The notes: generated by a model from the letters alone, not told the origin. A DNA stretch of 64,000 bases from Scyliorhinus canicula (GCF_902713615.1 NC_052162.1:113920226-113984225), one strand, 5' to 3'. Shown: positions 9,607 to 58,860, counted from the first letter of the stretch. Translations and numbers: made by a program.

Positions 9607-10533
9607 TCACTTGTGAACTTGTTGGTGTCTCAGCAGGCGCGATGAATAATGGTTTCCCTTCCCACACTGAGAGCAGATGAACGGCCTCTACCCAGTGTGA
9701 ACTCGCTGATGTGTCTGCAGGTGGGATGGATCACTCAATGCCTTCCCCTACTCAGAGCACGTGATTGCTTTGTCCCCAGTGTGAACTTGCTGGTGTCTCT
9801 TCAGGTTCGATAAGTCAGTGAATGCCTTCCCACACTGAGAGCAGGTGAATGGCCTCTCCCCAGTGTGAACTCGTTGGTGTGACTTCAGTCTGGGTAACCG
9901 AGTAAATCTCTTCCCACACTGAGAGCAGATGAACGGCCTCTCCCCAGTGTGGACTCGCTGGTGTCTCAATAGGTGGGATGAATCTCTGAATCCCTTCCCA
10001 CACTGAGAGCAGGTGAATGGCCTCTCCCCGGTGTGAACTCGCTGGTGAACCCGCAGAGTGGATAACTGACTGAATCCATTCCCGCACTGAGGGCAGGTGA
10101 ACGGCTTCTCCCCAGTGTGAACTCGCTGATGTTTCTTCAGGCTGGATAATTGAGTGAATCCCTTCCCACACTGAGAGCAGGGGAATGGCCTCTCTCCAGT
10201 GTGAACTCGCTGGTGTGACTTCAGGTTAGATAACTGAGTGAATCCCTTCCCACAGTGAGAACAGGTGAACGGCCTCTCTTCAGTGTGAACTCGCTGGTGG
10301 GACTTCAGGCTGGAGATTTGAGTGAATCCTTTCCCACACTGAGGGCAGGTGAACGGCTTCTCCCCAGTGTGAACTCGCTGGTGTTTTTTCAGGCTGGAAC
10401 ACAGAGTAAATCCCTTCTCACACTGAGAGCAGGTGAATGGCCTCTCCCCAGTGTGAATGCGTCGATGAATCTCCAGCTGAGATGGGATTCTGAATCTCTT
10501 CCCACAGTCCCCACATTTCCACCATTTCTCCAG
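9607..10533 (-). pseudogene. C2H2 ZNF gene A: 11 finger units, ATG changed to CTG, premature stops in fingers 10-11
   Basis: 927 nt = 11x84+3; reads [10 protein letters not shown] where paralogs read [10 protein letters not shown]; TAG at 9748-9750 and a second TAG in the last HTGE linker; 9 fingers still in frame. Confidence 0.85.
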
Positions 10534-11299
10534 GGTGGGGGTGTCCTTGTGTCTCTCCAGGTTTGTTGATTAGTTGAAGCCTCGTCCACACACAGAACAC
10601 GTATACGGTCTCTCCCCGCTGTGACTTGTGTGATGTTTTTTCAGGCTTTGTAGCAGGTTAAAGCTCTTTCCACAGTCAGTGCTCTGGAACACTCTCGTCT
10701 TGGTGCTTTTCCAGTCACACTGATGTTTAAAATCTTTTGATGCTGACAGATCCGGCAAACATTTCTCCTTTTAGATTCAAAGGCCGAATACTCAGATCCC
10801 AAGGTATCAAGTGATTCTGTAAGACCGAGACGTGACAATTGAGATTTCAGTCTGTAATTCCTCCTCTTGTAATATCTGTAAAAGGAATTTACAAAAGTCA
10901 GCACTCAGTCCAGGATAGAAATTCAGAACAGATAATTCTAGTTTCTCTGGAACATTCCTTCCTCTCATCCCCCAATCCCTCATCTCCAATACCTATTCCC
11001 CATACCTGTTATAATTTCCACGACATCAGGGATTCTATAATTAGGGGAACTGATAACATCCTTTGGAAGCAGGACGGAGAGTCCCACAGGGTATGTTGCC
11101 TGCCCGGTGCCAGGGTGATGATCATAACTTGCCAGAAGTCCCGACAAAATTAATAGTCGATAGAGGTCAGGGATTTAATACAATTAACATAGCTATACCA
11201 TCACTAACTAGGAAACTAATGGAATTAAAGAGTGACAAATCCCCAGGACCTGAAGGTTTCTAAGCGAGGGGGTTAAAGGAAGTCGGAGAGCACATTGTA

Positions 11300-12725
11300 C
11301 AGGGCAGACCCGGGGGTGAAGAGGGGCACATGGGACGGTTTTTAGATGAACTAGTTTCCACATTTGGAGGAAGAGAAGAGGCAGGCACTAGGGAAGCTCA
11401 TGGGGCTGAGTAAGGTATTGGATAGCAGAAGGGTTATGAAGTCGGGGAACGCCCCAGGGCTCGATGGCTACCCAGCGGAATTTTATAAGGGGTTTGCGAC
11501 AATCCTGGCACCACAGCTCTTAGCGGAGGTCAATGAGGCATTGCTCCAGGTGTCCATGGATGAGAAGGCATTCGACCGGATGGAGTGGCGGTTCCTGTTG
11601 GAGGTTCTGGGAAGGTTCGGGTTTGGGCCAAGGTTTGTGATATGGGTGCCTGTTATATGTGGCACCGCAGGCGAGTGTGCGGACCAATGACATGGGTTCA
11701 TGGAACTTTGAGTGCACAGGGGAACAAGGCAGGAGTTCCCGCTGTCGCCACTGCTATTTGTGCTGGCCGTAGAGCCTCTGGCAATGGCTCTTATGGGATC
11801 GGCTGAGTGGCAAGGGATTCCAGAAGGACGTAGGGAGCATCGGGTGTCGCTATACACCGAAGATCTACTATTGTATGTTTCTGACCTGCTGGAGAGCATG
11901 GAGAGGATCATGGGACTGTTGGGGAAGTTTGGGGTGTTCTCAGGATACAAGTTAAATGTAGGGAAAAGTGAAGTGTTCCCGGTGAACGAGTTGGGTCAGT
12001 GAGGCAATCTAGGGGGCATGCCATTTAAGCTGGCCAGAGACAGATTCAGATACATAGGGATTCAGGTAGTGAGGGAAAGGGTAATGCTACACGCTGCACT
12101 TGACTTTGGCAGGGAAGGTCCAAGTGGTGAACATGAACATTCTGCCGAGATTCATATTCCAGACACTCCTGATCTTTGTACCGAAGGCCTTCTTTCGAAA
12201 ACTGGATATGATTATTTCAGACTTTATATGGGCAGGGAAGGTGACAAGGGTTAAGACCCTGTTGCAGAGACAGAGGCAAGAAGGGAGGGTTGGCATTGCC
12301 AAACCTGCTACATTATTACTGGGCGTGAATGTGGAGAAGGTGAGGCTGTGGTGGGAAGGAGAAGGGGTAGGACAGATGTGGATGGAGGAAGAATCCTGTC
12401 GGGAGTCCAGCTTGAGGACTATGGTGACGGCGGCACAGCCAATGGCGCCAAGGAAACACTCGGAGAGTCCTGTCGTGTAGTCCATGGTGAAGATCTGGAA
12501 CCAGCTGAGGAGGCACTTTAGGATAATGGGGATGTCGGTGTTAAGCCATTGTGAAAAAACCACGGTTTTCAGCTGGGGAGGATAGATGGCATGTACAGGA
12601 AGTGGAGAGAAGTGGGGTTGGTTAAGGTGAGGGATCTGTACCTGGAAGAAGGGTTTGCCAGTATAGAGGAACGAAGGAGAGGTTAGAGCTCCCAAGAGGA
12701 AGTAAGTTTAGGTACCTGCAGGTAC
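11300..12725 (+). mobile_element. Degraded L1/Tx1 ORF2 (RT) fragment with internal deletions, in the ZNF A intron
   Basis: APGLDGYPAEFY, DEKAFDRMEW, RGTRQEFPLSPLLF, SLYTEDLLLY motifs. Confidence 0.85.
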
Positions 12726-12727
12726 CT

Positions 12728-13800: not shown

Positions 13801-14189
13801 ACAGTGCGATGCTTCAGATTGGGCGAGGATTATATCGAGTGGATTCAATTGTTATTAAAGGTAAAGTCGCCAAAGTTCCAGAAGACCATTGGCTATTTTC
13901 CCCTTTTGAGGGGTAGAGCTGACTGGTGGTGATTTAACATGAGGATCACCACACCTCAGGTGAGGGACAAGGTTGAAAAGGCAGGATCTTCAAGGATAAC
14001 CTCAGCCGGGAATTAAACCCACGCTGCTGGCCTTGCTCTGCATCACCAAACAGCTGTCCAGCCAACTGAGCTGAACCGGCCCCTGATATATTACAGGCTG
14101 GCCAGGGGCAGGGCTCATGGATGGTTTATGGTTGTTGTATTTCAGCTTCAGAGAGGGTCAAGACAAACAAATATGTCCGTGTGGGAGCA

Positions 14190-14960
14190 AAGGATGTCAA
14201 TGTCTTAAAGAGAGAGAGACCTGGGCCAAGCTTTCCAGAGTCTGCACCCTCCCTGGATTCACTTCCTTTCCCTTCAGTTGCTGCAAGTGACCAATTGAAG
14301 GTCAGAATGAGAAAAGAAATGGAAAGGGGGAGAAAAGAAAGTGTTTTACTCACAGATGTTGGAGACAGGAGGAAGTTTCAGTCTGGGTGAAACTCACTGT
14401 CCGTTTTATGAGGTCACAATGCAGCCCTCCCTGAATCAACCAATACGAATCACTCTGTACGTGGTGACGTCCCGGGTTCCATCGCGCAGGCACGACTCGC
14501 GGACACGGAAGACCCGCCCCCTGCACCTCCTCGACGGTTTCTCGGCAATCGGCTGACGGATAGAGCCAGAGTGAGAAACCGCTCGGTGATCTTCCTCTGC
14601 CCCGGCCCGCAATTGCGCATGCGCAAGGAAGGGGAGATTGCGCATATGCACGAGATCCCATCCCCTTACCTTCCTGCTGAGTGTTGACCAATGGGACGAC
14701 TTGGAGGACCAGAAGGACTGTGGTCCTCCAGCCAATTAGACCTCGGGCTTTGTGTGACTGCTTGATTGAACTTCACACAGACGGAAACCTCCTCCTGTCT
14801 CCAACAGCTGTGAGTAAAACACTTTCTTTTCTTCCCCTATCCATTTATTTTCTCATTCTCACCTTCAATTGGTCACTTGCAGCAACTGAAGGGAAAGGAA
14901 GTGAATCCAAGGAGGGTGCAGACTCTGCAAAGCTTGGTCCTGGTCTCTCTCTCTCTTAAA
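14190..14960. promoter_or_regulatory. Bidirectional ZNF promoter module A with inverted exon-1 donor arms
   Basis: CpG-rich core; CCAAT at 14440, 14688, 14732; TGACGTC 14465; TGCGCATGCGCA 14614-14625; CT|GTGAGT donors at 14353 (-) and 14810 (+). Confidence 0.75.
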
Positions 14961-14966
14961 GACATT

Positions 14967-15428
14967 ATGTGGAGATGCCGGCGTTGGACTGGGGTGAGCA
15001 CAGTAAGAAGTCTTACAACACCAGGTTAAAGTCCAACAGGTTTGTTTCAAACACGAGCTTTCGGAGCACGGCTCCTTCTTCAGGTGAATGGAAAGGCTTG
15101 TTCCAGAAATGTTTATATAGACACAGTCAGAGATGCCCGGAATGCGAGCACCTGCAGGCAATCAAATCATCAAAGATGCAGAGAGAGAGGTAACTCCAGG
15201 TTAAAGAGGTGTGAATTGTCCCAAGCCAGTTCAGTCGGTAGGCCTCTGCAAGTCCAGGCTTGTTGGTGGGGGCCGAATGTAATGCGACATGAATCCCAGA
15301 TCCCGGTTGAGTCCGCATTCATGCGTGCGGAACTTAGCTATAAGTTTTTGCTCAGCAATTTTGCGTTGTCGCGTCTCCTGAAGGCCTCCTTGTAGAATGC
15401 TGACCCGGAGATCAGAGGCTGAATGTCC
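14967..15428 (-). mobile_element. Penelope-like element 3' fragment (GIY-YIG end plus tail)
   Basis: Same tail as 37082-37781; flanked by aaagacatt duplication; splits the donor-arm module. Confidence 0.75.
15050..15088 (-). ncRNA. Minimal type I hammerhead-ribozyme motif in Penelope tail
   Basis: Minus strand cac-CTGAAGA-a-ggagc-cgt-gctcc-GAAAG-CTC-gtg. Confidence 0.6.
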
Positions 15429-17081
15429 TTAAAAGACATTGACATCCTTTGTTCCCTCAGCTCGACACATTTGTTTGTCTGGCTAAAAGGATGGTCTCTT
15501 TCCAAATGTTCACAATAAATCGGCTGGTTTCCCCAGGAGATAGCTGACATTTAAGGGGACAGTAAATTAATATAGGATGTCTAGTGTTGTTATATGGTAC
15601 AGATTAGATAGATTATTTATGGCTCGGTAATAAAGTACATTTATTATTATTTACAGTGTAATATGTACTGTGGCTGTGTTATATAGTTCCAGTCACGATG
15701 GCACAGAACGAGTGTGTTCAGCAACTACAGTCCATGCCGACTCTCTGTCGGACAACCCAGTCAGTTCCATTTCCCCTGATAGCCCCAATCCATTGCAAGT
15801 TTATTTCCTTAAAATACCAATTTCATATTAAAGTCATAAATCCACTCCACTGCCTTGTATAAAACAAATTCCAGGTCACAACCACTCAAATCTAAATAAA
15901 GTCTTCCTTTGATTCTCCTGTTAACTCTAATTAGTAAATATACTTATCTGTAGATGATGAAGTGAGTTCTCAAAGCAGAGGCACCTTGTGTCATATTTAT
16001 ATTAAATTTATATTATTTGCTATTACACTAAAAAGATATAAATCCTAGCTGCCACGTTCCTGCAGAGGATCAGGTCATGTAGACACACAGTGGATAGTTT
16101 ATTCAGCAGAACTCCGCTTACCGGCCGCCCCCAGGCAGCTGTCTCTGAACAATGGAACCAGCTAACGAAGTCAGGATAAGGAAGTCTCAAGCTTGTGACG
16201 TATTGTGAAGGCCCAAGGACAGCTGATGAGGGTTGTAGAAAACATCATTAAGAGGCCTCTGCCTTTCCATGAGCTGATCATGCAGCCCCATCATGTTGAG
16301 TAACTAATTTCATTGGATTGATACATAATCTAGAATCTATATGATTGGCTCATGTCCAGGCGAGGTGGGCAGAGTGAATGTTCTGATACTGTGTCCCCAG
16401 TGGCTTACTCCCCGCCGGCGTAATCATTAAATGTTTGGAGCAGACCCGAATGCTGAGTGATTCTTTTGGATTCATTCCCGCTAACAGTAGATTTTTAGGT
16501 TTTGAAAGAAAGGGATAAGCAGTAATCTGTCAATCAGTCGGAATCAGCACCTTCAGGAGAATTGGGACGGTGAATATTAGATAGCAGCAGAGTGAGAATG
16601 GAGGAAGAGTGTGTGGGGTGGAGATTTACAGCCTTGGGGAACGAGAGAGCAAAGAATTTTCCATTGAATCTAAAACTGACTGTTCAGAATTTCAATCCTG
16701 TACTGACAGTGATGACTTTTCTAAACTCCTTTTACAGGATATTAGAAGAGGAGGAATTGCAGACTGAAATCTCAAACTGACTGAGTCACTTGATTTCTTT
16801 GGACCTGAACATCATCGGCATTTGAATCTCGAAGGAGAAATATTTGCCAGATCTGTGTGCTTCAAAAGATTTGAAACATCAGTGTGACTGGGAAAGCACC
16901 GAGACACACACACCCTAGTGAGAGTGTTCCAGAGCACTGACTGTGGAAAGAGCTTTAACCAGTTACACTGCCTAAAAAAAATCACACCATTCACAGCGGG
17001 GAGAGACTGTAGACGTGTTCTGTGAGTCGAAGAGTCTTCAACTCATCATCGATCTTCGATGGAAACAAGGACACTTGCACC

Positions 17082-18008
17082 ATGAAGAAACCGTGGAAAT
17101 GTGGTGACTGTGGGAAAGGATTCCAGTCCCCATCTGCACTTGAAACCCATCGACGCAGTCACACTGGGGAGAGGCCGTTCACCTGCTCTGAGTGTTGGAA
17201 GGGATTCAGCGATTCATCCAACCTGCTGTCACACCAGCGAGTTCACACTAGGGAAAGGCTATTCAACTGCTCTGAATGTGGGAAGACATTCACTCGTTCA
17301 TCCTCTCTGCTGCGACACCAGCGAATTCACACTGGGGAGAGGCCGTTCACCTGCTCTCTGTGTAGGAAAGGTTTTACTCAGTTATCCAGCCTGCAAATAC
17401 ACCAGCGGGTCCACACTGGGGAGAGGCCATTCATCTGCTCTGAGTGTCGGCAGGAATTCAGTCAGTTATCCCACCTTGTAACACATCAGCGAGTTCACAC
17501 TGGTGAAAGGCCATTCACCTGCTCGGAGTGTGGCAAGGGATTCAGTCGGTTATCCCAATTGCAGACACACCAGCGAGTTCACTCTGGGGAGAGACCATTC
17601 ACTTGCTCTGTCTGTGAGAAGGGATTCACTGATCCATCCTACCTGTTGATACACCAACGGGTTCACACTGGGGGGAGGCCATTCACCTGTTCTCAATGTG
17701 GGAAGGGTTTTAGTCAGTCATCCCAACTGCTGATACACCAGCGGGTTCACACCGGGGAGAGGCCATTCATCTGCTCCGAATGTGGAAAGGGATTCACTGA
17801 TTCATCCGCCCTGCAGAAGCACCGGCGAGTTCACACTGGGGAGAGGCCGTTCACCTGCTCTGACTGTGGGAAAGGATTCGCTCAGTCTTCCCAACTGCTG
17901 ACTCACCAGCGGGTTCACACAGGGGAGAGACCGTTCTCCTGCTCTGAGTGTGCGAAGGGATTCACTCAGGTGTCCAACCTGCTGAGGCACCAGTGTGTTC
18001 ACAAGTGA
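17082..18008 (+). CDS. C2H2 ZNF protein B, 11 tandem fingers, 308 aa, no effector domain
   Basis: ATG 17082 ([10 protein letters not shown]) to VHK*; TGERPF linkers; acceptor ttttacag at 16737. Confidence 0.9.
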
Positions 18009-18073
18009 TTAAAGGAGTTGGAGTCTGTTGTTATTGCTGCTGTTAATCACATCCACGATTGAATTGTAACATA

Positions 18074-25379: not shown

Positions 25380-26054
25380 TCATTTGTGAACTCGCTGGTG
25401 TCTTTGGAGGTTGGATAACTGAGTGAATCCTTTACCACAGTCAGAGCAGGTGAACGGCCTCTCCCCAGTGTGAACTCTCTCATGCTTTAGCAGGTTAGAT
25501 GACTGACTGAAACTCCTCCCACACTTGGAACAAGTGAACAGCCTCTCCCCTGTGTGAATTCGCTTGTGCTTTCGCAGATTGGATGAGTGACTGAATCCCT
25601 TCCCACACTCTAAGCAGGTGAACGGTTTCTCCCCAGTGTGAACACGTTGGTGTGTCTGCAGGTGGGATAACTGAGTGAATCCCTTCCCACACATAAAGCA
25701 AGGGAAAAGTCTCTTCCCAGTGTGAACTTGCTGGTGTACTTTCAGGTGGGATAACTGAGTGAATCCCTTCCCACACACGGAACAGGGGAAATGTTTCTCC
25801 CCAGTGTGAAATTGCTGGTGTGCCTGCAGGTGGGATAACTGAGTGAATCCCTTCCCACACACAGAACAGATGTATGGCCTCTCCCCAGTGTGAACTTGCT
25901 GGTGTGTCTGCAGGTGGGATAACTGAGTGAATCCCTTCTCACACATGGAGCAGGTGAATGGCCTCTCCCCGGTGTGACTGTGTCGATGTCTTTCCAGATG
26001 GGATGGGCATTTGAATCCTTTCCCACAGTCCTCACATTTCCATGGTGTCTCCAT
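25380..26054 (-). CDS. C2H2 ZNF protein C, 8 tandem fingers, 224 aa
   Basis: ATG at 26054 ([10 protein letters not shown]) to VHK*; 675 nt = 8x84+3. Confidence 0.9.
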
Positions 26055-26869
26055 GATGCGGGCGTCCTTGCATCTCTCAAGATTCCCAAGATGATACAAC
26101 ACCTGTACGTTCTCTCTCCGCTGTGAATGGTGCAATGTTTTTTCAGGCTGTGTAGCTGTTTAAAGCTCTTTCCACAATTCATACAATGGAATACTTTAGG
26201 TTGCGTGTCTGTGCTTTCCGGTGCCTTCCCAGGCACACTGATCTTAAAAATATTTTGAAGCAGACAAAACAGATAAACATTTGTCCTTCTAGAATCAAAG
26301 GCCAATGATATTCAGGTCCTGCTGAATCGATTGACTCTGTCTAATCTTGATGTGACGTTTGAGTTGAGATTTCTGTCTGTAAATCCTCACCTTCTAACAT
26401 CCTGTAAAAGATTACAAAAAGTTATCACTGTCAGTACAGGATAGAGATTCAGCACAGACAATTCTAGTTTATCTGGAACATCCTTTCTTCTCTCGTTAAC
26501 CAAAAGCATCTAAATCTCCATCCCACACTCTCCCTCCATTCTCACTCTGCTGTACCTGATATTCACCCTCCCAATTCTCCTGAAGGTGCTGATTCATGCT
26601 GGTTGACAGATACATGTGTGCCGAATTTCTACATATTTATTGCACCAAAAATGAATGCAATGTACAGAACTGTATTTGCTGAGAATCAGGAATGGGGATT
26701 CTTGGTGTTTGGTATTCTTGCATCTAACCTGATGAGTGAAGATGAAAAGCTTCAACAGCAGGTCCCACATTTCAGCAATGCTCAATTAACAAGTGACGAC
26801 TGATATTACAAAACAGAAAAGAATAATCAATGCAACTTATCGATAACCAACAACACAAAACATATCTCT

Positions 26870-27700
26870 GTCCTGTATTAATTTACTGCCACTTAAATGT
26901 CAGCCATCTCCTGGGGAAACCAGCCCTTTAATTATAACATGAGGAAAGAGACCATCCTTTTCGCCAGACAAATAAATGTGTCAAGCTGAGGAAGCAAAGG
27001 ATGTCAATGTCTTCAAGAGAGAGAGACCTGGGCCAAGCTTTCCAGAGTCTGCACCCTCCCTGGATTCACTTCCGTTCCCTTCAGTTGCTGCAAGTGACCA
27101 ATTGAAGGTGAGAATGAGAAAATAAATGGAAAGGGGGAGAAAAGAAAGTGTTTTACTGACAGATGTTGGCGACAGGAACACGTTTCAGTCTGTGTGAAGC
27201 TCAATCTTCATTCACACAAAGGTCGCGCTCTGATTGGCTGGAGGACAAGAGTCCTTCCGGTTCTTAAGCAGTTTCCATTGTCAATACCTCAACAGAAAGG
27301 TCAGGGGTGTGCTCTTCCCCGCACATGCGCATATTCCCCTTTCCTTTGGACATGCGCAGTCCCGGGACCTGGGGGTGGGGGAGACCACGGAGCGGCTTCT
27401 CGCTCTGGCGGGATTGCCTGCTGGTTGCCTGCAAACCTGGTCTCGAGAAGGTTATGGGGGAGGGGAAGGCGTCACGTAACAGCACACTGGAACCCGGTGA
27501 CGTCACCGCGGAGCAGAGTGATTTCTATTGGCTGATTCATATTGGGTTAACTTGTGATGTCACAATGTGGAGGTTGGACAATGAGTTTCAGACTAAAACT
27601 TCCTCCTCTGGGCAACATCTGGGTGCAAATCAATGTCTCCCCCTTTCCATTTCTTATCTCATTCTGGGGGGACATTGGTGACTTGCAGCAACTGAATCCA
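26870..27700. promoter_or_regulatory. Bidirectional ZNF promoter module B, core inverted relative to A
   Basis: TGACGTCA 27498-27505, ATTGG boxes, GCACATGCGCA motifs; left donor arm GTCAGT on minus strand; right arm degenerate (catctGGgtgc). Confidence 0.7.
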
Positions 27701-27999
27701 GTCTGTATATTACACATTTTAATCCAATAATATAGACGTATATCTGTCTGGCAGCCTGCATGAAGATTTTCAGGTTCTGTGTCCAGGACAGGGAGCAGTG
27801 AGCTTGGATCTGTCAATCAGCCTGAATCAGCACCTTCGGGAGAATTGGGAGGGTGAATATTAGATACAGCAAAGTGAGAATGGAGGGAGAGGGTGTGGGA
27901 TGGAGATTTACAGCTTTTGGGGAATAAGAGAGGAAAGAATGTTCCTGAGAAATTGTTCTGAATTTCTATCCTGGACTGACAGTGCTAACTTTTGTAAAT

Positions 28000-28212: not shown

Positions 28213-28572
28213 AACTTTTGTAAATTGTTTTGACAGGATATTAGACAAGGAGGAGTTACAGACAGAAATCTCATAATTCACATCTCAACCTGACAGTCAC
28301 TCAATTCATCGGCGCCTGAATATCATCAGCCTTTGAATCTTGAAGGAGAAATGTTTGTCTGTTCTGTCTACTTCAGAGTTTAAATCAGTGTGACTGTAAA
28401 ATCACCGAGACACATACACCCGAGTGAGACTGTTCCAGGGCACTGACTGTGGAAAGAGCTTTAACCAGTTACATTGCGTGAAAAAATATCACACTATTCA
28501 CAGCGGGAAGAGACCATACACGGTTCTGTGTGTGGACGAGACTTCAACTGATTGTCCGAGGAGACTCAAAAC

Positions 28573-29103
28573 ATGGAGAAACCATGGAAATGTCGGAACT
28601 GTGTGAAGTGATTCAGAGTCCGATCTAAGTTGGAAACTCATCGACGCATTCACAATGGGGAGAGGCCATTCACCTGCTCTGTGTGAGATGGGATTCAGTG
28701 ATTCATCCAGCCTGCAGAGACACCAGCGAGTTCACACTGGGGAGAGGCTGTTCACCTGCTCTCAGTGTGGGAAGGGGTTCTGTGATTCATCCACTCTGCG
28801 GTCACACCAGTGAGTTCACACACGGGAGAGTCCGTTCACCTGCTCTCAGTTTGGGAAGGGATTCAGTCGTTTATCCAACCTGAAGTCACACCAGCAAGTT
28901 CACGCTAGAGAGAATCCATTCACCTACTCTCAGGTGAATGGCCTCTCCCCATTGTGGATAGTGAGATGGGATTCACTCAGTTATCCATCCTGCGGAGACA
29001 TCAGCGAGTTCACACTGGGGAGAAGCCATTCAACTGCTCTCAGTGTGGGAAAGGATTTTGTGATTCATGGCACCTGCTGAGACACCAACAAGTTCACAAT
29101 TGA
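28573..29103 (+). pseudogene. C2H2 ZNF pseudogene D
   Basis: ATG GAG AAA CCA TGG start then in-frame TGA and frameshifts; ends VHN*. Confidence 0.85.
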
Positions 29104-29119
29104 TTTCAGGGTTTTTTTT

Positions 29120-38701: not shown

Positions 38702-39544
38702 TCACTTGTGAACTCGCTGGTGTCTCAACAGGTGGGATGATTGAATGAAGCCCTTATCACACACGGAACATATGAAAGGTCTCTCCCCAGTGTGAACACG
38801 CTGGTGTTTCTGCAGATGGGATGACTGACTGAATCCCTTCCCACACGCGGAGCAAGTGAACGGCTTCTCCCCAGTGTGAATCCGCTTGTGCTTCCGCAGG
38901 CTTGAAGAATGACTGAATCCCATCCCACATTCCGTGCAGGTGAACGGTCTCTCCCCGGTGTGAACTCGCTGGTGTGCCCGCAGGTTGGATGACTTCCGAA
39001 ACCGCTTTGTGCAGTGAGAGCAGCTGTATGGTCGCTCCTCAGTGTGAATGCGCTGGTGAATCATCAGATCTGCAGCACATTTGAAGCCAGTCCCGCAGTC
39101 AGAGCATTTAAAGGGTCTCTCATTGGTGTGAGTGACATTGTGTCTCTGCAGGCTGGAAAACTGAGTGAATCCCTTCCCACACACAGAGCAGGTGAACAAC
39201 CTCTCCCCAGTGTGAACTGGCTGGTGTCTCTGCAGACTTGATGAATAATTGAATCCCTTCCCACACACAGAGCAGATGAATGGCCTCTCCTCAGTGTGAA
39301 TGCGCTGGTGGGACACCAGTTCCACAGCACTTTTGAAGCCACTCTCGCAGTGAGGGCATTTAAAAGGTCTCTCATTGGTGTGAGTGACATTGTGTCTCAG
39401 CAGGCTGAATGACTGAGTGAATCCCTTCCCACACACAGAGCAGGTGAATGGTTTCTCTCCAGTGTGAATGCGCTGATGAATATCCAGTGCAGATGGAGAT
39501 TTGAATGCTTTTCCACAGTCCCCACATAGCCACCGTTTCTCCAT
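38702..39544 (-). CDS. C2H2 ZNF protein E, 10 tandem fingers, 280 aa
   Basis: ATG at 39544 (MEKRWLCGDC) to VHK*; 843 nt = 10x84+3. Confidence 0.9.
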   Translation of the reverse strand: MEKRWLCGDCGKAFKSPSALDIHQRIHTGEKPFTCSVCGKGFTQSFSLLRHNVTHTNERPFKCPHCESGFKSAVELVSHQRIHTEERPFICSVCGKGFNYSSSLQRHQPVHTGERLFTCSVCGKGFTQFSSLQRHNVTHTNERPFKCSDCGTGFKCAADLMIHQRIHTEERPYSCSHCTKRFRKSSNLRAHQRVHTGERPFTCTECGMGFSHSSSLRKHKRIHTGEKPFTCSACGKGFSQSSHLQKHQRVHTGERPFICSVCDKGFIQSSHLLRHQRVHK

Positions 39545-40614
39545 GCTACTGGTGTCCTTGTGACTCTCCAGGTTCAATGATCAGTTGAAGCCTCATCCAC
39601 ACACAGAACACGTGTACGGTCTCTCCCCGCTGTGAATGGTGTGATGTTTTTTCAGGCTGTGTAACTGGTTAAAGCTCTTTCCACAGTCAGTGCTCTGGAA
39701 CACTCTCACTCGGGTGTCTGTGTCTCGGTGCTTTTCCAGTCACACTGATGTTTAAAATCTTTTGAAATAAACAAAACATATAAATATTTATCCGAGATTC
39801 AAAGGGTGATGATATTCTGATGCTGATGAATCGATTGACTATCAGATCTTGACATGACGTTTGGTTTGAGATTTGTGTCTGGAAATCTTCACCTAATAAC
39901 CTGTAAAAAGAATTTACAAAAATTATCATAGTCAGTGTAGTATAGAAATTCAGAACAGCTGAATCCCCAAAAGCTGTAAATCTCCATCCCACACACTCTC
40001 CCTCCATTCTCACTCTGCTGTATCTAATATTCACCCTCCCAATTCTCCTGAAGGTGCTGATTCAGGCTGATTGACAGATCCCTGCTCACTGCTTCCTGTC
40101 CTGGTCACAGAGACCTGAAAAAGTTCATGCAAGTTGTCAGACAGACATTTGTCTGTGTTACTGAACTAAAAATGTGTTTAATGGATAGCATTGTTTCAGT
40201 TGGTTCAGATACAGGGGGCTTGTCATTGATCTGGCTATGAGGGCAGTCAGGCAATGATGATCAATCCTTTCCAAATGAAATTGGATGGACGCTGCAGGGT
40301 TCTGAATGAACCAACCCGAGACTGACAAAATTACTCGACAGAGAGCCAGCAGTTATTCAATGTACTTCTTCTGTACAGTGATTGGGGTTACACCAACCCT
40401 TCAAAAAGACCATCCTACCTAGGCCAGTCGCACACCCTATCACCGTAACCCCACCTTATCTTTGGACACTTTAGTATGGCCTATCTACCTCACCTCCACA
40501 TCTTATATTACAAGATTGTAATAAAGTGTGCTTTATTACAGAACCATAAATAATATTTCTAATCTGTACCATATAACACTGTAAATATCTCTGTCCTCAA
40601 AGAATCAGAGTTTT

Positions 40615-42680: not shown

Positions 42681-42699
42681 TAAACAAATCAAAAATTGC

Positions 42700-43462
42700 A
42701 GCCCAGAATGAGAAAAGACATGGGAAGAGGAGAAAAGAAAGTGTTTTACTCACAGATATTGGAGTCAGGAGGATGTTTTCAGTCTGTGTGAGGCTTTGCC
42801 GGGCAAGACCAAGCTCTGGGCAACCAAGGCCACAAAGCCAAGACTCTGATTGCTGGAGGACCAGCTCCCTTCCGGTCCTCCACGAGTTCCCATTGGTCAA
42901 TCTCCCTCATGGAGACAATGAGGAGCCGGGCTTCGGCTCACGTGGGGGTGGGCGGGGAATTGACCTCCCGACGCTGAGCTGTTGTCCAATCCGGAGTGTT
43001 TTGTTTCTGTGACCGGGGTATTGCCCAAATGGGAAACTGTGTGCTGGAAACGTCACTCGGAGTCGTTGTGACGTCATAACGGAGCCTTGCCTGAATCAAC
43101 TAATAGCACTCTGCCCCGCGGTAACGTCACCGGGTTCCAGTGTGCAGGCCCGGACACGAGAGTCCCGCCCCACCCATTGTTCCCCTCCCCCTACACATCC
43201 TCGACGCAAGGTTTCCCAACAACCGGCTGACTGCTCTGGCCAGAGCGAGAAGCCACTTGGTGACCTTCTCTCCTCCCCTAGACCGGGACTGCGCATGTGC
43301 AGAGGTGGCGCCCTGATCAACACCGCCTGCTGAGGCGTTAACCAATAGGATGAGTTGGTGGATCGGAAGGACTCGGCTCCTCCAGCCAATTAGAGCGCGG
43401 GCTTTGTATGAATGAAGATTGAGCTTTACACAGATTGCAACTTCCTCCTGTCTACAACATCT
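42700..43462. promoter_or_regulatory. ZNF promoter module C
   Basis: Minus donor arm at about 42750, TGACGTCA 43069-43076, TGCGCATGTGCA, CCAAT boxes; right arm stops at caacatct. Confidence 0.7.
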
Positions 43463-44687
43463 GATTGATTTATTATTGTCACATGTATCAGTCTACCGTG
43501 AAAAGTATTGTTTCTTGCATGCTGTACAAACAATGCACACCCTATATAGGGAAAGAAGGGGGGAAATGCAGAATATAATGTTACATTTATTGCAAGGTGT
43601 AGAGAAAAGATCAACTTAATACGAGGTAGTGTCCATTCAAAAGTCTGATGGCAGTAGAGAAGAAGCTGTTCTTGAGTTGGTTGGTACGTGACCGCAAACT
43701 TTGGTATCTTTCTCCTGAAGGAAGAAGGTGAAAGAGAGTATGTCCCGGGTGCGTGGGGTCCTTTATCATGCTGGCTGCCTTTCCGAGGCAGCTGGAATTG
43801 TAGACAGAGTCAATGGATGGGAGGCTGGTTTGCATAATGGATTGGGCAACATTCACAACCTTTTGTAGTTTCCTGCAGTCTTGGGCAGAGTAGGATCCAT
43901 GCCAAGCTGTGATATAACCAGAAAGAATGCTTTCTATGGTGCATCTGTAGAAGTTGGCGAGCGTCATAGCTGATGTGCCAAATTTGCTTAGTCTTCTGAG
44001 AAAGTAGTCATTCGTCGTGTCTAACTATAGTGTCAGCATGGGGGACCAGGACAGGCTGTTGGTGATCTGCACACCTAAAACTTGAAGCTCACAACCCTTT
44101 CTACTTCGTTCCCATTGATGGAGACAGGGGCATGTACTGCACTATGCTTCCTGAAGTCAATGACAATCTCCTTCATTTTGTTGACATTGAGGGAGAGATT
44201 ATTGTCATCGCCAGATACTCTATCTCATTCCTGTACTCTGGCTCGTCACTGTCTGAAATCCGACCCACTATGGTGGTGTCATCAGCAAATTTGAAAATCG
44301 AGTTGGAGGGAATTTGGCCACACCGTCATAAGTGTATAAGGAGTATAGTAGGGGGCTGAGGACACAGCTTTGTGGGGCACCAGTGTTGAGGATGATTGTG
44401 GAGGAGGTGTTGTTGTCTATCTTTACTGATTGTGGCCTGTGGGTTAGAAAGTTCAGGATACAGTCATAGAGGGAGGAGCCGGGCCAAGGCCACAGAATTT
44501 GGAGATGAGTTTCATAGGAATAATGGTGTTGAAGGCTGAGCTGTAGTCGATAAATAGGAGTCTGACATAGGTGTCTTTGTTATCTAGGTGTTCCAGGGTA
44601 GAGTGCAGGGCCATGGAGATGGCGTCCGCTGTGGACCTGTTGTAGCGGTAGGTGAACTGTAGTGGATCAAGGCAATCTGGGAGGCTG
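43463..44687 (-). mobile_element. Rex1/Babar-type LINE 3' part
   Basis: FYRCTIESILSGYITAW...DPTHPGHTLFHLLPSGERY...SFFSTAIRLLN C-terminal domain. Confidence 0.8.
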
Positions 44688-47779: not shown

Positions 47780-48540
47780 TGCCCTCCACCCCCACTTTTC
47801 ATCCCAGTCCAAGGGGTTTGGAGATGGTTAATGGCAGCTGAATCTCCCATAGTCCCCCTCGCCGGAGAAACCGCTCCATCCACCGCGGGGTGGCGGCCAG
47901 GGACTGCGCATGTTCAAAGGAGAGGAGTAGATGCGGGTGCGCAGAAACGGTTCTTCCCAAAGAGGTCAAACGGGCATCCATGACCACGTGACATCCGTTG
48001 CCCATTGTATTCGGCGCCCAGCAGCCAATGGAAAGATTGGAGGACCGGAAGGACTCTGGTCCTCCCGGTTTGTGTGAATGAAATTTGAGGTTCGGACAGA
48101 GTGTGCCGAACATCTGTGAGTAAAACACTTTCTTTTTTCCCCCTTTCCATTTCTTTTCTCATTCTCACCTTCTATTGGTCACTTGCAGCAACTGAAGGGA
48201 AAGGAAGTGAATCCAGGGAGGGTGCAGACTCTGGAAAGCTTGGCCCAGGTCTCTCTCTCTCTCTCTCTCTCTGAAAGACATTGACATCCTTTGCTCCCTC
48301 AGCTTGACACATTTATTTGTCTGGCTAAAAGGATGGTCTCTCTCCTAATGTTCACAATTAAAGGGCAGGTTTACCCATGAGATGGCTGACATTTAAAGGG
48401 ACTGTAAATCAATGTAGGATAGAGATATGTCTGGTGTTTTTGTATGGTGCAGACTAGATATAGTATTAATGGTTCTGTAATAAAGCACATTTATTATTTC
48501 TAGTTGTGTAATATAGGACTGTAGCTACGTTATATATTTC
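47780..48540 (+). promoter_or_regulatory. ZNF promoter module D with plus-strand exon-1 donor arm
   Basis: CCAAT, ggaggacc...ggtcctcc palindrome, catct|GTGAGT at 48116; arm matches 14810-15660. Confidence 0.7.
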
Positions 48541-50300: not shown

Positions 50301-50324
50301 CTCTTTTGGAATCACCCTAAAGTC

Positions 50325-53966: not shown

Positions 53967-55755
53967 TAAGACCATAAGACATAGGAGTGAAAGTAAGGCT
54001 ATTCGGCCCATCGAGTCCACTCCGCCATTCAATCATGGCTGATGGGCATTTCAACTCCACCTACCAGCATTCTCCCCGTAGCCCTTAATTCCTCGCGACA
54101 TCAAGAATTTATCTATCTCTGCCTTGAAGCCATTTAGCGTCCTGGCCTCCACTGCACTCCGCGGCAATGAATTCCACAGGCCCACCACTCTCTGGCTGAA
54201 GAAATGTCTCCGCATTTCTGTTCTGAATTTACCCCCTCTAATTCTAAGGCTGTGCCCACGGGTCCTTGTCTCCTCGCCTAACGGAAACAGTTTATTTGCG
54301 TCCACCCTTTCTAAGCCATGTATTATCTTGTAAGTTTCTATTAGATCTCCCCTTAACCTTCTAAACTCCAATGAATACAATCCCAGGATCCTCAGCCGTT
54401 CCTCATATGTTAGAGCCGCCATTCCAGGGATCATCCGTGTGAATCTCCGCTGGACACGCCCCAGTGCCAGTATGTCCTTCCTGAGATGTGGGGCCCAAAA
54501 CTGGACACAGTACTCCAAATGGGGCCTAACCAGAGCCTTATAAAGGCTCAGTAGCACATCGCTGCTTTTATATCCCAACCCTCTTGAGATAAATGACAAC
54601 ATTGCATTCGCTTTCTTAATCACGGATTCAACCTGCATGTTTACCTTTAGGGAATCCTCAACTAGCACTCCCAGATCCCTTTGTACTTTGGCATTATGAA
54701 TTTTCTCACCGTTTAGAAAGTAGTCTACGCTTGGATTCTTTTTTCCAAAGTGCAAGACCTCACATTTTCTCACATTGAATTGCATCAGCCATTTCCTGCA
54801 CCACTCTCCCAAACTGTCTAGATCCTTCTGCAGCCTCCCCACTTCCTCAGCACTACCTGCCTGACCACCTAACTTCGTATCATCGGCAAACTTCGCTAGA
54901 ATGCCCCCAGTCCCTTCATCCAGATCATTAATATATATGGTGAACAGCTGCGGCCCCAACACTGAACCCTGTGGGACACCGCTGGTCACCGGCTGCCATT
55001 CCGAAAAAGAACCTTTTACCCCAACTCTCTGCCTTCTGTCAGACAGCCAATCCTCAACCCATGCCAGTAGCTCACCTCGAACACCATGGGCCCTCACCTT
55101 ACTCAGCAGCCTCCTGTGTGGCACCTTATCAAAGGCCTTTTGGAAATCCAGATAGATCACATCCACTGGGTTTCCCTGGTCTAACCTACTTGTCACCTCC
55201 TCAAAGAATTCTAACAGGTTCGTCAGGCACGACCTCCACTTACTAAATCCATGTTGACTTGTTCTAATCCGACCCTGCTCTTCCAAGAATTTAGAAATCT
55301 CATCCTTAACGATCAATTCTAGAATTTTACCAACAACCGAGGTTAGGCTAATTGGCCTATAATTTTCCATCTTTTGTCTTGATCCTTTCTTAAACAAGGG
55401 GGTTACAACAGCGATCTTCCAATCGTCCGGGACTTTCCCTGACTCCAGTGATTTTTAAAGATCTCAACCAACGCTTCCGCTATTTCTTCAGCCACCTCCC
55501 TCAGAACTCTAGGGTGTAGCCCATCGGGGCCAGGAGATTTGTCAATTTTAAGACCTTTTAGCTTTTTTAGCACCATCTCTTTTGTAATGGCAACCATACT
55601 CAACTCAGCCCCCTGACCCTTTATCATTTTTGGGATATTACTCATGTCTTCCACTGTGAAGACAGACGCAAAGTACTTATTAAGTTCTCCAGCCATTTCC
55701 TCGTCTCCCATCACTAGCCTTCCAGAATCAGTTTGAATTGGCCCAATGTCTACTT
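53967..55755 (-). mobile_element. Young 5'-truncated CR1/HER1 LINE
   Basis: Microsatellite-like tail tcttatggtcttat; one frameshift near 55400-55460. Confidence 0.9.
54051..55397 (-). CDS. CR1 ORF2 reverse transcriptase domain, 448 aa uninterrupted
   Basis: YRPISLTS, QHGF, LDFQKAFDKV, GVPQGSVLGP, FADD motifs. Confidence 0.85.
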   Translation of the reverse strand: MFKKGSRQKMENYRPISLTSVVGKILELIVKDEISKFLEEQGRIRTSQHGFSKWRSCLTNLLEFFEEVTSRLDQGNPVDVIYLDFQKAFDKVPHRRLLSKVRAHGVRGELLAWVEDWLSDRRQRVGVKGSFSEWQPVTSGVPQGSVLGPQLFTIYINDLDEGTGGILAKFADDTKLGGQAGSAEEVGRLQKDLDSLGEWCRKWLMQFNVRKCEVLHFGKKNPSVDYFLNGEKIHNAKVQRDLGVLVEDSLKVNMQVESVIKKANAMLSFISRGLGYKSSDVLLSLYKALVRPHLEYCVQFWAPHLRKDILALGRVQRRFTRMIPGMAALTYEERLRILGLYSLEFRRLRGDLIETYKIIHGLERVDANKLFPLGEETRTRGHSLRIRGGKFRTEMRRHFFSQRVVGLWNSLPRSAVEARTLNGFKAEIDKFLMSRGIKGYGENAGRWS

Positions 55756-56646: not shown

Positions 56647-56659
56647 CTACCAGGTCAGG

Positions 56660-57215: not shown

Positions 57216-57693
57216 ATAAAAAAAAATGTAGAGTACCCAGTTCTTTTCTTTTCCAATTAAGGGGCAATTTAGCGTGGCCAATTCACATACCCTGCACGTC
57301 TTTTGGGTTGTAGGGGTGAGATCCACGCAGATATGGGGAGAATGTGCAGAATCCACATGGACAGTTACGTCGGGGCTGACATCAAACCCGGGTCCTTGGC
57401 GCTAAGAGGCAGCAATGCTAACCACTGTGCCACCATGCTGTTCCCGTCAAATGTGAAGACAATGTGATGAAGCTTTGGAATTCTCTACCCCAGAGGATTG
57501 AGGAGCCTCAGTTATCAAGTATTTTCCAGACCGAGATTGATAGGCTTCTAGGTAGTGAAGATATCGAGGGATATGGGGAATAGTGTGGGAAAATGCTGCT
57601 GAGGTAGATCGGCCAATTATCCCATTGAATGGTTGGGCAGGCTCGATGGGCTGAATGGCTGACTGCAGCTCCTATTATGATCTCTGTGTCCAG

Positions 57694-57759
57694 GACAGGA
57701 AGCAGTGAGCAGGGATCTGTCAATCAGCCTGAATCAGCACCTTCAGGAGAATTGGGAGG
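57694..57759 (+). other. Predicted 66-nt non-coding exon 2 of ZNF F
   Basis: tgtccAG acceptor and GG|GTGAAT donor; module conserved near 16530, 26580 (-), 27790, 40040 (-). Confidence 0.55.
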
Positions 57760-58269
57760 GTGAATATTAGATACAGCAGGGTGAGAATGGAGGGAGAGTG
57801 TGTGGGATGGAGATTTACACCTTTTGGGGAATGAGAGAGAAAAGAATGTTCCAGCGAAACTAGAATTGTCTGTTCTGAATTTCTATCCTGCACTGACAGT
57901 TATGTCTTTTCTAAACTCCTTTTACAGGATGTGAAAAGGATAGGATTTACAGACAGAAATCTCAAACATCACGTCTGGATCTGATAGAGTCACTCAGTTC
58001 AGCGGCCATTAAATCTAGAAGAAAAATGTTTGCCCGACCTGTTGGCTTCAAAAGATTTTAAACGTCAGTGTGACTGGAAAAGCACCGAGACACACACACC
58101 CCGAGTGAGAGTGTTCCAGAGCACTGACTGTGGAAAGAGTTAGAACCAGTTACACCGCCTGAAAAAACATCGCACCATTCACAGCGGGGAGGGACCGTAT
58201 ACGTGTTCTGTGTGTGGACGAGGCTTCAACTGATCGTCCGACCTGGAGAGACACAAGGAGACCCAAAAC

Positions 58270-58860
58270 ATGGAGAAACCGTGGAAATGTGGGGACTGTG
58301 GAAAGGGATTCAGAGTCCCATCTGTGCTGGAAGCTCATCGACGCAGTCACACTGGGGAGAGGCCGTTCATCTGCTCTCAGTGTGGGAAGAGATTCACTTG
58401 GTTACACAACCTGCAGTCACACCAGCGATTTCACACTGGGGAGAGGCCATTCACCTGCTCTGTGTGTGAGAAGGGATTCACTCGGTTACAGAACCTGCAG
58501 ACACACCAGCGAGTTCACACTGGGGAGAGGCCATACTCCTGCTCTCAATGTGGGAAGGAATTCAGTGAGTTAGCCAGCCTGATGAAACACCAGCGAGTTC
58601 ACACTGGGGAGAGGCCGTTCACCTGCTCTCAGTGTGGGAAGGGATTCACTCAATTATCCAGCCTGAAGTCACACCAGCGAATTCACACAGGGGAGAGGCC
58701 ATTCACCTGCTCTCAATGTGGGAAGGCATTCACTCAGTCATCCAACCTGCAGATACACCAGCGAGTTCACACTGAGGAGAAGCCATTTACCTGCTCTCAG
58801 TGTGGGAAGGGATTTTGTGTTTCATCGCGCCTGCTGACACACCAAAAGGTTCACAAGTGA
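58270..58860 (+). CDS. C2H2 ZNF protein F, 7 tandem fingers, 196 aa
   Basis: [10 protein letters not shown] to VHK*; acceptor ttttacag at 57927; 591 nt = 7x84+3. Confidence 0.9.

Follow-up and report, generated by a model that had tools for sequence, protein, structure and literature searches.

In the human genome, KRAB-ZNF clusters are mostly head-to-tail arrays. A head-to-head two-gene unit that recurs around a shared promoter is known from the H2A-H2B histone pairs, in which the partners are different, co-required genes that are kept intact. Here a promoter was treated as bidirectional where it lies between genes on opposite strands whose 5′ ends fall within 1 kb. ETS/GABP, NRF-1 and CCAAT are among the motifs discussed for human promoters of this type (PMC2077898, PMC3082894). 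The KRAB-box families of tetrapods form a TE-recognition system that has been reported to be lacking in cartilaginous fishes (PMC8455134). The FiNZ-ZNF genes have a conserved 28-aa glutamate-rich N-terminal domain and are restricted to cyprinids (Wells et al. 2023, PMC10547256). The catshark genome paper (PMC11979771) makes no mention of zinc fingers, and our literature search found no description of a head-to-head ZNF arrangement on a copied promoter. We analysed a 64-kb stretch of the Scyliorhinus canicula genome, hereafter the window, to which all positions refer. The window is repeat-rich.

Results

Organisation of the locus

Six C2H2 ZNF exons are ordered A<-pA->B, C<-pB->D, E<-pC, pD->F, where pA to pD are candidate promoter modules (Table 1). 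The ZNF arrays, with a period of 84 nt, lie at 9.5-10.7 kb (-), 17.0-18.0 kb (+), 25.3-26.1 kb (-), 28.6-29.0 kb (+), 38.6-39.7 kb (-) and 58.1-58.9 kb (+). Together with the positions of the donor-arm motif (see below), these arrays confirm the head-to-head layout of the original prediction. The ORFs are of the Krueppel poly-C2H2 type, with 28-aa fingers and TGEKP-like linkers, and 44 fingers were extracted from the arrays. Those of B, C, E and F match the Pfam families zf-C2H2 and zf-H2C2_2 (E values 1e-43 to 1e-75). Assembly GCA_902713615.2, which also includes a protein assigned by NCBI to Scyliorhinus canicula, contains records of ORFs B and E, in agreement with the shark-lineage origin that had been proposed. 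The window opens with the tail of a seventh ZNF gene, with GTTCACAAGTGA at 5-16; positions 1-318 correspond to 9622-9308, inverted, at 82%.

Genes B, C, E and F are intact, with 7-11 fingers, and all lie on the class-1 side of a module, as defined below. Their class-2 partners A and D are both pseudogenes. Gene A has CTG at 10533 where its paralogues have ATG, and in-frame TAG codons at 9750-9748 and 9690-9688, and intron 2 of gene D carries an insertion of ~240 nt with a poly-G run. With A and D dead, no module in the window drives two live genes, and the co-expressed two-gene cassette that had been envisaged is not found: none of the modules has two intact genes.

Table 1. Features of the catshark window, in order of position.
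Feature	Position	Strand	Remarks
Tail of seventh ZNF gene and 3′ flank	1..318	+	last codons, stop 14-16; tail-to-tail with gene A
Gene A exon 3, pseudogene	9607..10875	-	acceptor 10877-10876; family stop 9609-9607
pA left arm: putative exon 1 of A and 5′ intron 1	14161..14396	-	last base 14354, donor GTGAGT; class-2 side
pA core	14397..14766		short CpG island, o/e 0.88; class-2 left, class-1 right
pA right arm: putative exon 1 of B and 5′ intron 1	14767..14966	+	exon end 14809, donor GTGAGT
Gene B exon 2, non-coding	16505..16569	+	donor GG/GTGAAT after 16569; 5′ boundary predicted
Gene B exon 3	16738..18008	+	344-nt decayed-finger leader, ATG 17082, 308 aa, 11 fingers, stop 18006-18008
Gene C exon 3	25380..26401	-	leader, ATG 26054, 224 aa, 8 fingers (four near-identical), stop 25382-25380
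Gene C exon 2, non-coding	26567..26632	-	5′ boundary predicted
pB left arm: putative exon 1 of C and 5′ intron 1	26966..27203	-	last base 27161, donor GTCAGT; class-1 side
pB core	27204..27575		inverted homologue of pA core; CpG o/e 0.64
pB right arm: degenerate exon 1 of D	27576..27700	+	nominal end 27620, decayed donor GGTGCA; class-2 side
Gene D exon 2, non-coding	27787..27852	+	66 nt
Gene D exon 3, pseudogene	28237..29110	+	ATG 28573 kept; stop in first finger; array frameshifted, truncated
Gene E exon 3	38702..39900	-	leader, ATG 39544, 280 aa, 10 fingers, stop 38704-38702
Gene E exon 2, non-coding	40035..40100	-	66 nt; surrounding 150-nt block 98% identical to that of F
pC left: putative exon 1 of E	42694..42900	-	last base 42754, donor GTGAGT
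pC core	42901..43463	+	pA orientation: class-2 remnant, NRF1-like site, class-1 side; ends in orphan exon 1
pD half-module	47860..48540	+	GCGCATG, CACGTG, CCAAT, intact ETS palindrome; F exon 1 ends 48115, donor GTGAGT; conserved 5′ intron 1 reaches ~48540
Gene F exon 2, non-coding	57694..57759	+	66 nt
Gene F exon 3	57928..58860	+	leader with TGA 13 codons before ATG, ATG 58270, 196 aa, 7 fingers, stop 58858-58860

Candidate promoter modules and first exons

Local alignments between the pA, pB and pC cores gave z scores of 51-72, and these three share a full core of ~370 nt. The fourth predicted copy is only partial: pD has a 42-nt block with CCAAT and the ETS palindrome (z 11-17), together with exon 1 and its arm. 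From left to right, the pA core holds a CRE half-site and a CCAAT box, the NRF1 site GCGCATGCGC, and then a CCAAT box, the palindrome GGAGGACC-N11-GGTCCTCC and a further CCAAT box; the pB core contains TGACGTCA, two copies of CATGCGC, CTTCCGG and CCAAT boxes. On the class-1 side the palindrome, which includes the ETS motif CCGGAAG, stands between two CCAAT boxes, and a CRE together with an inverted CCAAT is found on the class-2 side. This asymmetry is common to pA, pB (inverted) and pC over their alignments, extending for ~300 nt in pA and pB. Since pA and pB have the same asymmetry, a two-sided promoter appears to have been copied as a unit.

The cores have CpG o/e values of 0.64-0.90, the window as a whole 0.38. 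However, comparable values occur in other stretches of the window, and CpG richness alone is therefore not diagnostic of the cores. The four cores account for all six GCGCATG half-sites in the 64-kb window and for both TGACGTCA sites, and no TATA match was listed in the cores by the motif scan. The cores are more diverged (K2P 0.34-0.43) than the presumably neutral leaders of the ZNF exons (0.17-0.33), so that only the motif islands look constrained. The ETS/GABP, NRF-1 and NF-Y motifs of these TATA-less CpG islands are conserved in the core alignments. Moreover, the opposite exons 1 end at 14354/14809 (pA), 27161/27620 (pB) and 42754/43463 (pC), placing each pair within 1 kb when judged by these last bases, TSS positions being predicted. 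Divergent transcription from the cores would be expected from this arrangement.

A 25-nt donor-arm motif occurs five times with at most 3 mismatches, against none expected (14338-, 14801+, 27145-, 42738-, 48107+), and the GT donors of exon 1 are intact in five of seven copies. Two inverted donor arms had been predicted for both pA and pB. Those of pA (14209-14396 and 14767-14954) are 93% complementary, forming a 188-nt inverted repeat around the 370-nt core, but the right arm of pB is degenerate. At pC, the class-1 proximal promoter (CCAAT and the palindrome with CTTCCGG) is present in an additional, inverted copy, which precedes the left exon 1. The right-facing exon 1 of pC is an orphan, with unrelated sequence from the exact donor position and no gene behind it, contrary to the expectation that every arm leads to a ZNF exon. 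The first ~300 nt of intron 1 are the best-conserved part of the unit (84-98%, against 64-82% for exon 1), and arm homology continues for a further 250-400 nt into intron 1 in B, C and F; in B it is interrupted by a repeat insertion (14967-15431) and resumes at 15432-15689. The 5′ ends of exon 1 are class-specific, A resembling D and B resembling C.

The exon-2 motif is found five times, against none expected, and gene A lacks exon 2. Its donor is intact in all five copies. Each of the six genes has an exon-3 acceptor module, in which the branch point ACTGAC is invariant. Thus the predicted path from the arms to the ZNF exons holds throughout for the acceptor, but gene A has no exon 2 on the way. 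The 5′ boundary of exon 2 is not uniform, differing between B/C and D/E/F. The exon-2/intron-2 block is conserved throughout, intron included, and its exon-2 region has no CpG island and no promoter motifs. The conserved donors, branch point and acceptors suggest that exons 1, 2 and 3 are spliced together, with a putative intron 1 of 9.6 kb, filled with repeats, in gene F.

Open reading frames and selection

Only zinc-finger Pfam families match the ORFs: KRAB (PF01352) is absent from all of them, as are SCAN (PF02023) and BTB. Between exon 1 and the ATG there is no conserved coding block, and in gene C the exon-1 donor and the ATG are only ~1.1 kb apart with no meaningful ORF between them, too little for an effector exon to fit in. 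The genes are therefore KRAB-less, as predicted. Each ORF starts at a Met within a finger linker (MEKPWKC...), behind the remains of an earlier finger array; this leader has decayed in each of the six genes, with extra stops that differ from copy to copy. In A (TAA) and in E and F (TGA), the start is preceded by a stop at a distance of 13 codons. Genes B to F all retain the Met start, and the 14-residue start of the window ORFs is also annotated in proteins of Pristiophorus and Chiloscyllium, which belong to two other shark orders. Translation would thus begin at MEKPWKC, and the products would be expected to bind DNA in a sequence-specific manner. The genes had been described as effector-less. 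This is true of the ORFs, which contain no effector domain, but an open pre-finger leader of ~45 aa, with no Pfam match, is retained by catshark and other shark paralogues, indicating that the fingers-only state is derived and N-terminally truncated.

The four ORFs (196-308 codons) are open despite terminal-branch divergences of 8-19% in the leader; under neutral substitution with the branch lengths of the leader tree, all four would remain open with a probability of ~1e-7. In six finger pairs picked by similarity, omega was 0.29 for scaffold codons and 1.6 for contact codons. These patterns indicate that the ORFs are under purifying selection and that their DNA-contact residues are diversifying.

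Discussion

The catshark genes resemble tetrapod KRAB-ZNF clusters, such as those of human chromosome 19, in being tandem-amplified Krueppel C2H2 genes with TGEKP-like linkers, in having short 5′ exons followed by a single large 3′ exon that holds the whole finger array, and in their high pseudogene turnover and conserved scaffold with diversified DNA-contact residues. Unlike those clusters, they have no KRAB, SCAN or BTB domain or exon, their ORFs start in a linker, and they stand head-to-head on a common duplicated two-sided promoter. Cyprinid FiNZ-ZNF is likewise a lineage-specific, KRAB-independent and massively duplicated fish family whose copies have a common promoter architecture. However, the catshark ORFs begin directly with a finger, with zero N-terminal sequence, and their host is a shark; judged by the published description of FiNZ, they would fall outside that family. 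With opposite exon-1 donors 455-709 nt apart, and TATA-less, CpG-rich sequence containing CCGGAAG, GCGCATGCGC, TGACGTCA and CCAAT, the modules are similar to vertebrate CpG-island bidirectional promoters (GABP/NRF-1/NF-Y). In contrast to these, the catshark promoter is itself repeated, has inverted copies of one first exon and intron start on either side, and serves genes that are mutual paralogues. A recurring head-to-head two-gene unit with one promoter also recalls the H2A-H2B pairs, but the catshark partners are paralogous and one per complete pair has decayed.

We consider it likely that the window is part of a lineage-specific, KRAB-less Krueppel-type C2H2 ZNF cluster of the catshark, built on duplicated two-sided promoter modules. 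A gene of this cluster would have two short, non-coding exons and a large exon 3 with a ~340-nt leader of dead fingers. Its translation would start at a Met in place of Gly in a TGEKP-type linker, so that the protein would consist only of 7-11 fingers. The promoters would be short, TATA-less CpG islands with NRF1, CRE/ATF, NF-Y (CCAAT) and ETS/GABP-type sites, each an asymmetric two-sided module capped on both sides by inverted copies of exon 1 and 5′ intron 1. Module and flanking genes would have spread by segmental duplication with at least one inversion, later gene conversion having blurred this history. Decay would then have hit the class-2 partners A and D and one class-1 half (the right of pC), with class-1 sides still driving B, C, E and F. 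For the conservation peak in intron 1, this model has no explanation other than gene conversion or an intronic element of unknown kind. The segment trees disagree, the leader tree grouping A with B (90/89) and the exon-2/intron-2 tree grouping B with C (84/88) and A with D (72/73). Hence, of the proposal that the cassette is copied whole, duplication of the two-sided promoter as a unit is upheld by the asymmetry of pA and pB in opposite orientation, but the gene trees do not settle between copying of whole cassettes and of single genes. On present evidence, the window appears to reflect ordinary segmental duplication and decay.

Each pair could instead stem from a separate, local event in which one gene was duplicated in inverted orientation together with its promoter, with conversion between neighbouring inverted copies keeping them alike. 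The sister position of A and B in the leader tree fits such a history, as do E and F as the second-closest pair (K2P 0.178), their near-identical exon-2 blocks, and arms that are 3-5 times less diverged than adjacent cores and leaders (A-C arm 0.068, leader 0.33), the expected product of gene conversion. We nevertheless find it rather unlikely, because one-sided promoters duplicated independently should give symmetric modules and not one asymmetric module twice; pA and pB have a common asymmetric core in opposite orientation, exon-1 5′ ends follow class, and the exon-2/intron-2 tree pairs genes across modules. It is quite improbable that the cores and arms are not ZNF promoters and first exons at all, the ZNF genes being transcribed from the exon-2/intron-2 block and the cores making unrelated divergent non-coding transcripts. 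Conservation of that block with its intron would suit this arrangement, and some shark gene models run through the exon-3 acceptor (LLIQ/GIRRGG); the length and repeat content of the putative intron 1 of gene F also speak for it. However, the arms all aim at the next same-strand ZNF exon with nothing else between, splice donors, branch point and acceptors are conserved at the right places, and the exon-2 region is devoid of promoter features. Decay is also joint: exon 2 is missing from pseudogene A, pseudogene D has a decayed exon-1 donor, and no gene remains at the orphan half of pC.

Superficially, the inverted repeat around the pA core is TIR-like and the window is rich in repeats. That the core and arms are a promoter-carrying, MITE-like mobile element with ~190-nt TIRs, landed beside ZNF genes, is nonetheless extremely improbable. 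Homology passes the arm ends into intron 1, the extent of the copies varies, there are no Rfam matches, and all four copies in the 64 kb lie upstream of ZNF exons in the correct orientation, whereas true repeats may lie anywhere in the window and reach as many as 10 copies. Classification as a TIR transposon or MITE was rejected, since within the 64-kb window the core and arms have no defined ends, no visible target-site duplication and are all ZNF-linked. We also hold it very improbable that the cluster is a graveyard, inactivated on loss of the N-terminal leader and first fingers, with the ORFs as leftovers. The shared stop upstream of the start, the universally decayed leader, two clearly dead genes out of six and the open leader of relatives would accord with this, but four intact ORFs at such leader divergence, the low scaffold omega, and a Met start kept in five genes and annotated in two other orders argue against it.

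Going beyond the preferred duplication of two-sided modules, the promoter with its inverted arms might be the unit by which a large effector-less ZNF family is amplified across the catshark genome, with recombination between arms flipping the core and reassigning the strong class-1 side. This would yield a KRAB-independent DNA-recognition repertoire, possibly directed at TEs, with birth and death built in. We regard this as clearly unlikely; core flipping would explain why the pA and pB cores are inverted while their left arms are mutually nearest relatives, why the start of intron 1 is the best-conserved part of the unit, and why the class-2-side partner dies. If sharks do have a large fingers-only ZNF family amplified head-to-head on a copied bidirectional promoter, it would be an independent case of ZNF expansion, and would raise the questions of how proteins that lack a repressor domain exert an effect and whether promoter architecture shapes the birth and death of genes.

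Gene map and gene model of the cluster

Six C2H2 finger arrays, on alternating strands, were found across the whole window. A 25-nt donor motif (at up to three mismatches) and a 34-nt exon-2 motif each occur there five times against an expectation of zero, and one acceptor module, whose branch point is always ACTGAC and which also has a pyrimidine tract and AG, is common to all six genes. Therefore, the gene map of the original prediction, in which CpG-rich promoter modules (pA to pD) face zinc-finger (ZNF) genes A to F in the layout A<-pA->B, C<-pB->D, E<-pC, pD->F, is correct; the limits given for it, 9607 and 58860, coincide with the A and F stop codons. A seventh ZNF gene (+) is cut by the window start, leaving at 1-318 its last four codons, a stop at 14-16 and then its 3′ flank. 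This flank matches the 3′ flank of gene A in inverted orientation (82%), so the two genes lie tail-to-tail. Assembly GCA_902713615.2 contains the exact ORFs of B and E, as well as a protein named Scyliorhinus canicula by NCBI; the exact ORF of F had no record.

Coordinates of the ZNF genes and associated features (gene locations are those of the finger arrays, all with 84-nt periodicity)
Feature	Strand	Location	Exon 1 last base	Exon 2 last base	Exon 3 first base	Start	Stop	ORF	Conserved intron-1 start
Gene A	-	9.5-10.7 kb	14354	none	10875	10533 (CTG, not ATG)	9609-9607		
Gene B	+	17.0-18.0 kb	14809	16569	16738	17082	18006-18008	308 aa, 11 fingers, intact	14810-15100
Gene C	-	25.4-26.1 kb	27161	26567	26401	26054	25382-25380	224 aa, 8 fingers, intact	26860-27160
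Gene D	+	28.6-29.0 kb	27620 (donor decayed)	27852	28237	28573		array broken	
Gene E	-	38.7-39.6 kb	42754	40035	39900	39544	38704-38702	280 aa, 10 fingers, intact	
Gene F	+	58.3-58.9 kb	48115	57759	57928	58270	58858-58860	196 aa, 7 fingers, intact	48116-48540
LINE-type insertion ORFs, F intron 1	-	54051-55397, 50739-51488							

Read off the sequence, each ZNF gene would have three exons. The non-coding exon 1 finishes in CATCT before a GTGAGT donor, whilst exon 2, ~66 nt long and lacking an ATG, finishes in GGGAGG before a GTGAAT donor. Intron 2 spans ~170 nt, and a ~340-nt leader of decayed fingers at the 5′ end of exon 3 precedes the ORF. No match to the exon-2 motif came from a metagenome scan. 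A separate promoter adjoining exon 3 could instead transcribe the ZNF exons, but the conserved splice signals, and the fact that exon 1, exon 2 and gene have decayed together, speak against it.

Several repeats lie amongst these genes. Intron 1 of F is 9.6 kb long and carries a 448-aa reverse-transcriptase ORF (RVT_1, E 2e-31) and a second ORF with a weak zf-RVT match; both are LINE-type insertions. A ~1-kb repeat is present in two inverted copies (6672-7647 and 32183-33153, 92-96% identity), both of which contain an RT-like C-terminal ORF, and a ~200-nt SINE-like repeat occurs at no fewer than 10 sites in the window (e.g. 13332-13554, 40613-40788 and 57223-57440). A GC-rich 19-nt minisatellite (18397-19374; about 51 copies, 83% matches) begins ~390 nt past the stop codon of B and gives spurious minus-strand ORFs of 250-380 aa with no Pfam match.

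Architecture of the promoter modules

The cores, i.e. the centres of the modules, are short CpG islands with an observed/expected CpG ratio of 0.64-0.90 against 0.38 window-wide. They are thus CpG-rich as originally described but not unique in this, as comparable ratios occur in several other parts of the window. All six GCGCATG half-sites in the 64-kb window fall within the four cores, one of them as the full GCGCATGCGC, as do both TGACGTCA sites. CCGGAAG and CCAAT boxes are also present, and no TATA match was listed in the cores. ETS/GABP, NRF-1 and CCAAT sites are the motifs taken up in papers on human bidirectional promoters (PMC2077898, PMC3082894).

Alignment separates two kinds of promoter side within the asymmetric core. 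The class-1 side consists of a CCAAT box, the palindrome GGAGGACC-N11-GGTCCTCC holding CCGGAAG, a second CCAAT box and then exon 1; the class-2 side consists of a CRE and an inverted CCAAT box, followed by exon 1. From this arrangement, class-1 sides would drive B, C, E, F and the orphan right-facing exon 1 of pC, and class-2 sides would drive A and D. The palindrome around the ETS core is intact at 14703-14729 (B), 42850-42882 (E) and 48039-48065 (F), and is partly decayed in the C promoter and in the orphan right half of pC; six of the eight palindrome half-sites of the window lie within cores.

The claim that all four modules are copies of one core stands for pA, pB and pC, which have the entire asymmetric core in common (local-alignment z 51-72), with that of pB inverted relative to the other two. 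It does not extend to pD, which shares with the other modules only a 42-nt class-1 block (z 11-17), exon 1 and the arm (exon 1 and the 5′ part of intron 1). An additional inverted class-1 copy in pC precedes exon 1 of E. The right-facing exon 1 of pC stops precisely at the donor position, where unrelated sequence takes over, and has no gene downstream.

Duplication history of the modules

The modules were also weighed as an unrelated, MITE-like transposable element. This is unlikely and was rejected, since homology passes the ends of the arms, target-site duplications are absent and every copy within the 64-kb window is ZNF-linked, in keeping with the original reading of the module as tied to ZNF exons.

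Whether a whole cassette was copied, promoter and flanking genes together, is a question on which the segments disagree. In favour of such copying, pA and pB have an identical asymmetric two-sided arrangement in opposite orientation, the 5′ end of exon 1 carries class-specific differences (A like D, B like C), an unbroken tract of homology in B, C and F takes in the class-1 promoter, exon 1 and ~400 nt of intron 1, and the exon-2/intron-2 tree groups (B,C) at 84/88 and (A,D) at 72/73. Against it, the leader tree places pair partners as sisters, (A,B) at 90/89, with E and F also close, and the divergence is a mosaic: K2P distances are 0.07-0.16 amongst the arms of A, B, C and F, up to 0.19-0.37 for the short D and E arms, 0.17-0.33 for leaders and 0.34-0.43 for cores. 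The arms tree is unresolved, and no strongly supported branch separates cassette copying from pairwise inverted duplication. We conclude that the two-sided promoter module was probably duplicated as a unit, given the same asymmetric core in pA and inverted pB, and that gene conversion probably later overwrote much of its history. Of the proposed copying of the cassette whole, the promoter part is thus retained; the flanking genes may not always have travelled with it.

The best-conserved part of the unit is the first ~300 nt of intron 1 (84-98% in B, C and F), with a peak 50-100 nt past the donor; by comparison, exon 1 reaches 64-82% and the distal core 50-60% in these genes. Gene conversion could account for this, as could an unknown intronic element. 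A hidden RNA structure was rejected (fold z -0.34 to +0.55), and Rfam gave no match in the window, this segment included.

Truncation of the N-terminal region

In every copy the leader (16738-17081 in B, 57928-58269 in F and the equivalents elsewhere) consists of the remains of about three fingers. Genes A (TAA), E and F (both TGA) carry a stop 13 codons 5′ of the start. In D this finger position is also occupied by a TGA, which a deletion has moved nearer the ATG, whilst B reads TCA there and C has a deletion. Each leader has its own additional stops and frameshifts. Some leaders hold a short upstream ATG (MFA-stop type) whose frame and length are not conserved. The predicted start Met (MEKPWKC) occupies the linker-Gly position, and the same start is annotated in one sawshark and one bamboo-shark protein.

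RefSeq proteins of S. canicula (two named), S. torazame (two), Cetorhinus (one) and Stegostoma (one) have an open pre-finger segment of ~45 aa, G[IV]RRGGF..KLKP.ITSGSD..PEY..LNMEGKS, to which the decayed leader is homologous. The six copies of the window all have this segment in a dead state. An exhaustive search with the leader returned nine proteins, and those whose source was checked were all from sharks; a word-based search returned the query itself only. A protein search with the B fingers was swamped by tetrapod ZNFs, with one sawshark match besides. A Pfam search of the open segment gave no match, and it could be a shark-specific N-terminal module.

ORFs B, C, E and F matched only zinc-finger Pfam families, with no match to KRAB, SCAN or BTB. 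When the window was compared with itself, the stretch from exon 1 to the ATG showed no other block that was conserved and not a repeat, and in the most compact gene, C, this interval (~1.1 kb) holds no meaningful ORF. The idea of an effector exon within the introns was therefore rejected, there being no conserved non-repeat block with an ORF and no Pfam domain in the open leader of the relatives. The description of these genes as effector-less consequently holds for the present ORFs but not as an original state: their fingers-only state is derived, by truncation.

Gene integrity and selection

Genes B, C, E and F are intact, and A and D are dead. Gene A lacks exon 2, has CTG for ATG and no Met anywhere in frame, and contains in-frame TAGs at 9750-9748 and 9690-9688; a 272-aa automatic call over it begins at the non-start codon ACA and was not counted as evidence. 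In gene D the exon-1 donor is decayed, the first finger contains a stop and there are several frameshifts. Its intron 2 (~28000-28236) contains a ~240-nt insertion with a long poly-G run at its beginning. All four intact genes lie on class-1 sides and both dead genes on class-2 sides, which with six genes is a pattern and not a statistic.

For a neutral test, each ORF was mutated to the extent given by the terminal branches of the leader tree (lengths 0.077-0.19). The chance of staying open was 0.002-0.07 for each of B, C, E and F and ~1e-7 jointly; therefore these ORFs are under purifying selection. A wholly dead cluster is rejected by the integrity of the ORFs. Variability amongst 44 fingers is highest at the helix contact positions (mean entropy 2.3 bits vs 1.1), and omega is ~1.6 for contact codons and 0.29 for scaffold codons in six reciprocal-best finger pairs, a small sample chosen by similarity. 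Gene C contains four consecutive near-identical fingers (25560-25940; helix TQLSHLQ/K.HQQ), pointing to recent finger duplication within the array.

Relation to known ZNF expansions

A literature search turned up no account of head-to-head ZNF cassettes from sharks, and the paper on the catshark genome (GCF_902713615.1, sScyCan1.1), which includes transcriptomic data, does not mention zinc fingers (PMC11979771). KRAB families are reported absent in cartilaginous fishes (PMC8455134). The catshark cluster resembles the KRAB-independent FiNZ expansion of cyprinids (PMC10547256) in being a ZNF expansion without KRAB. Divergent-promoter function of the modules is predicted. The finding is real in sequence and would be a combination of two known kinds of feature, a lineage-specific ZNF cluster and a putative bidirectional CpG promoter.
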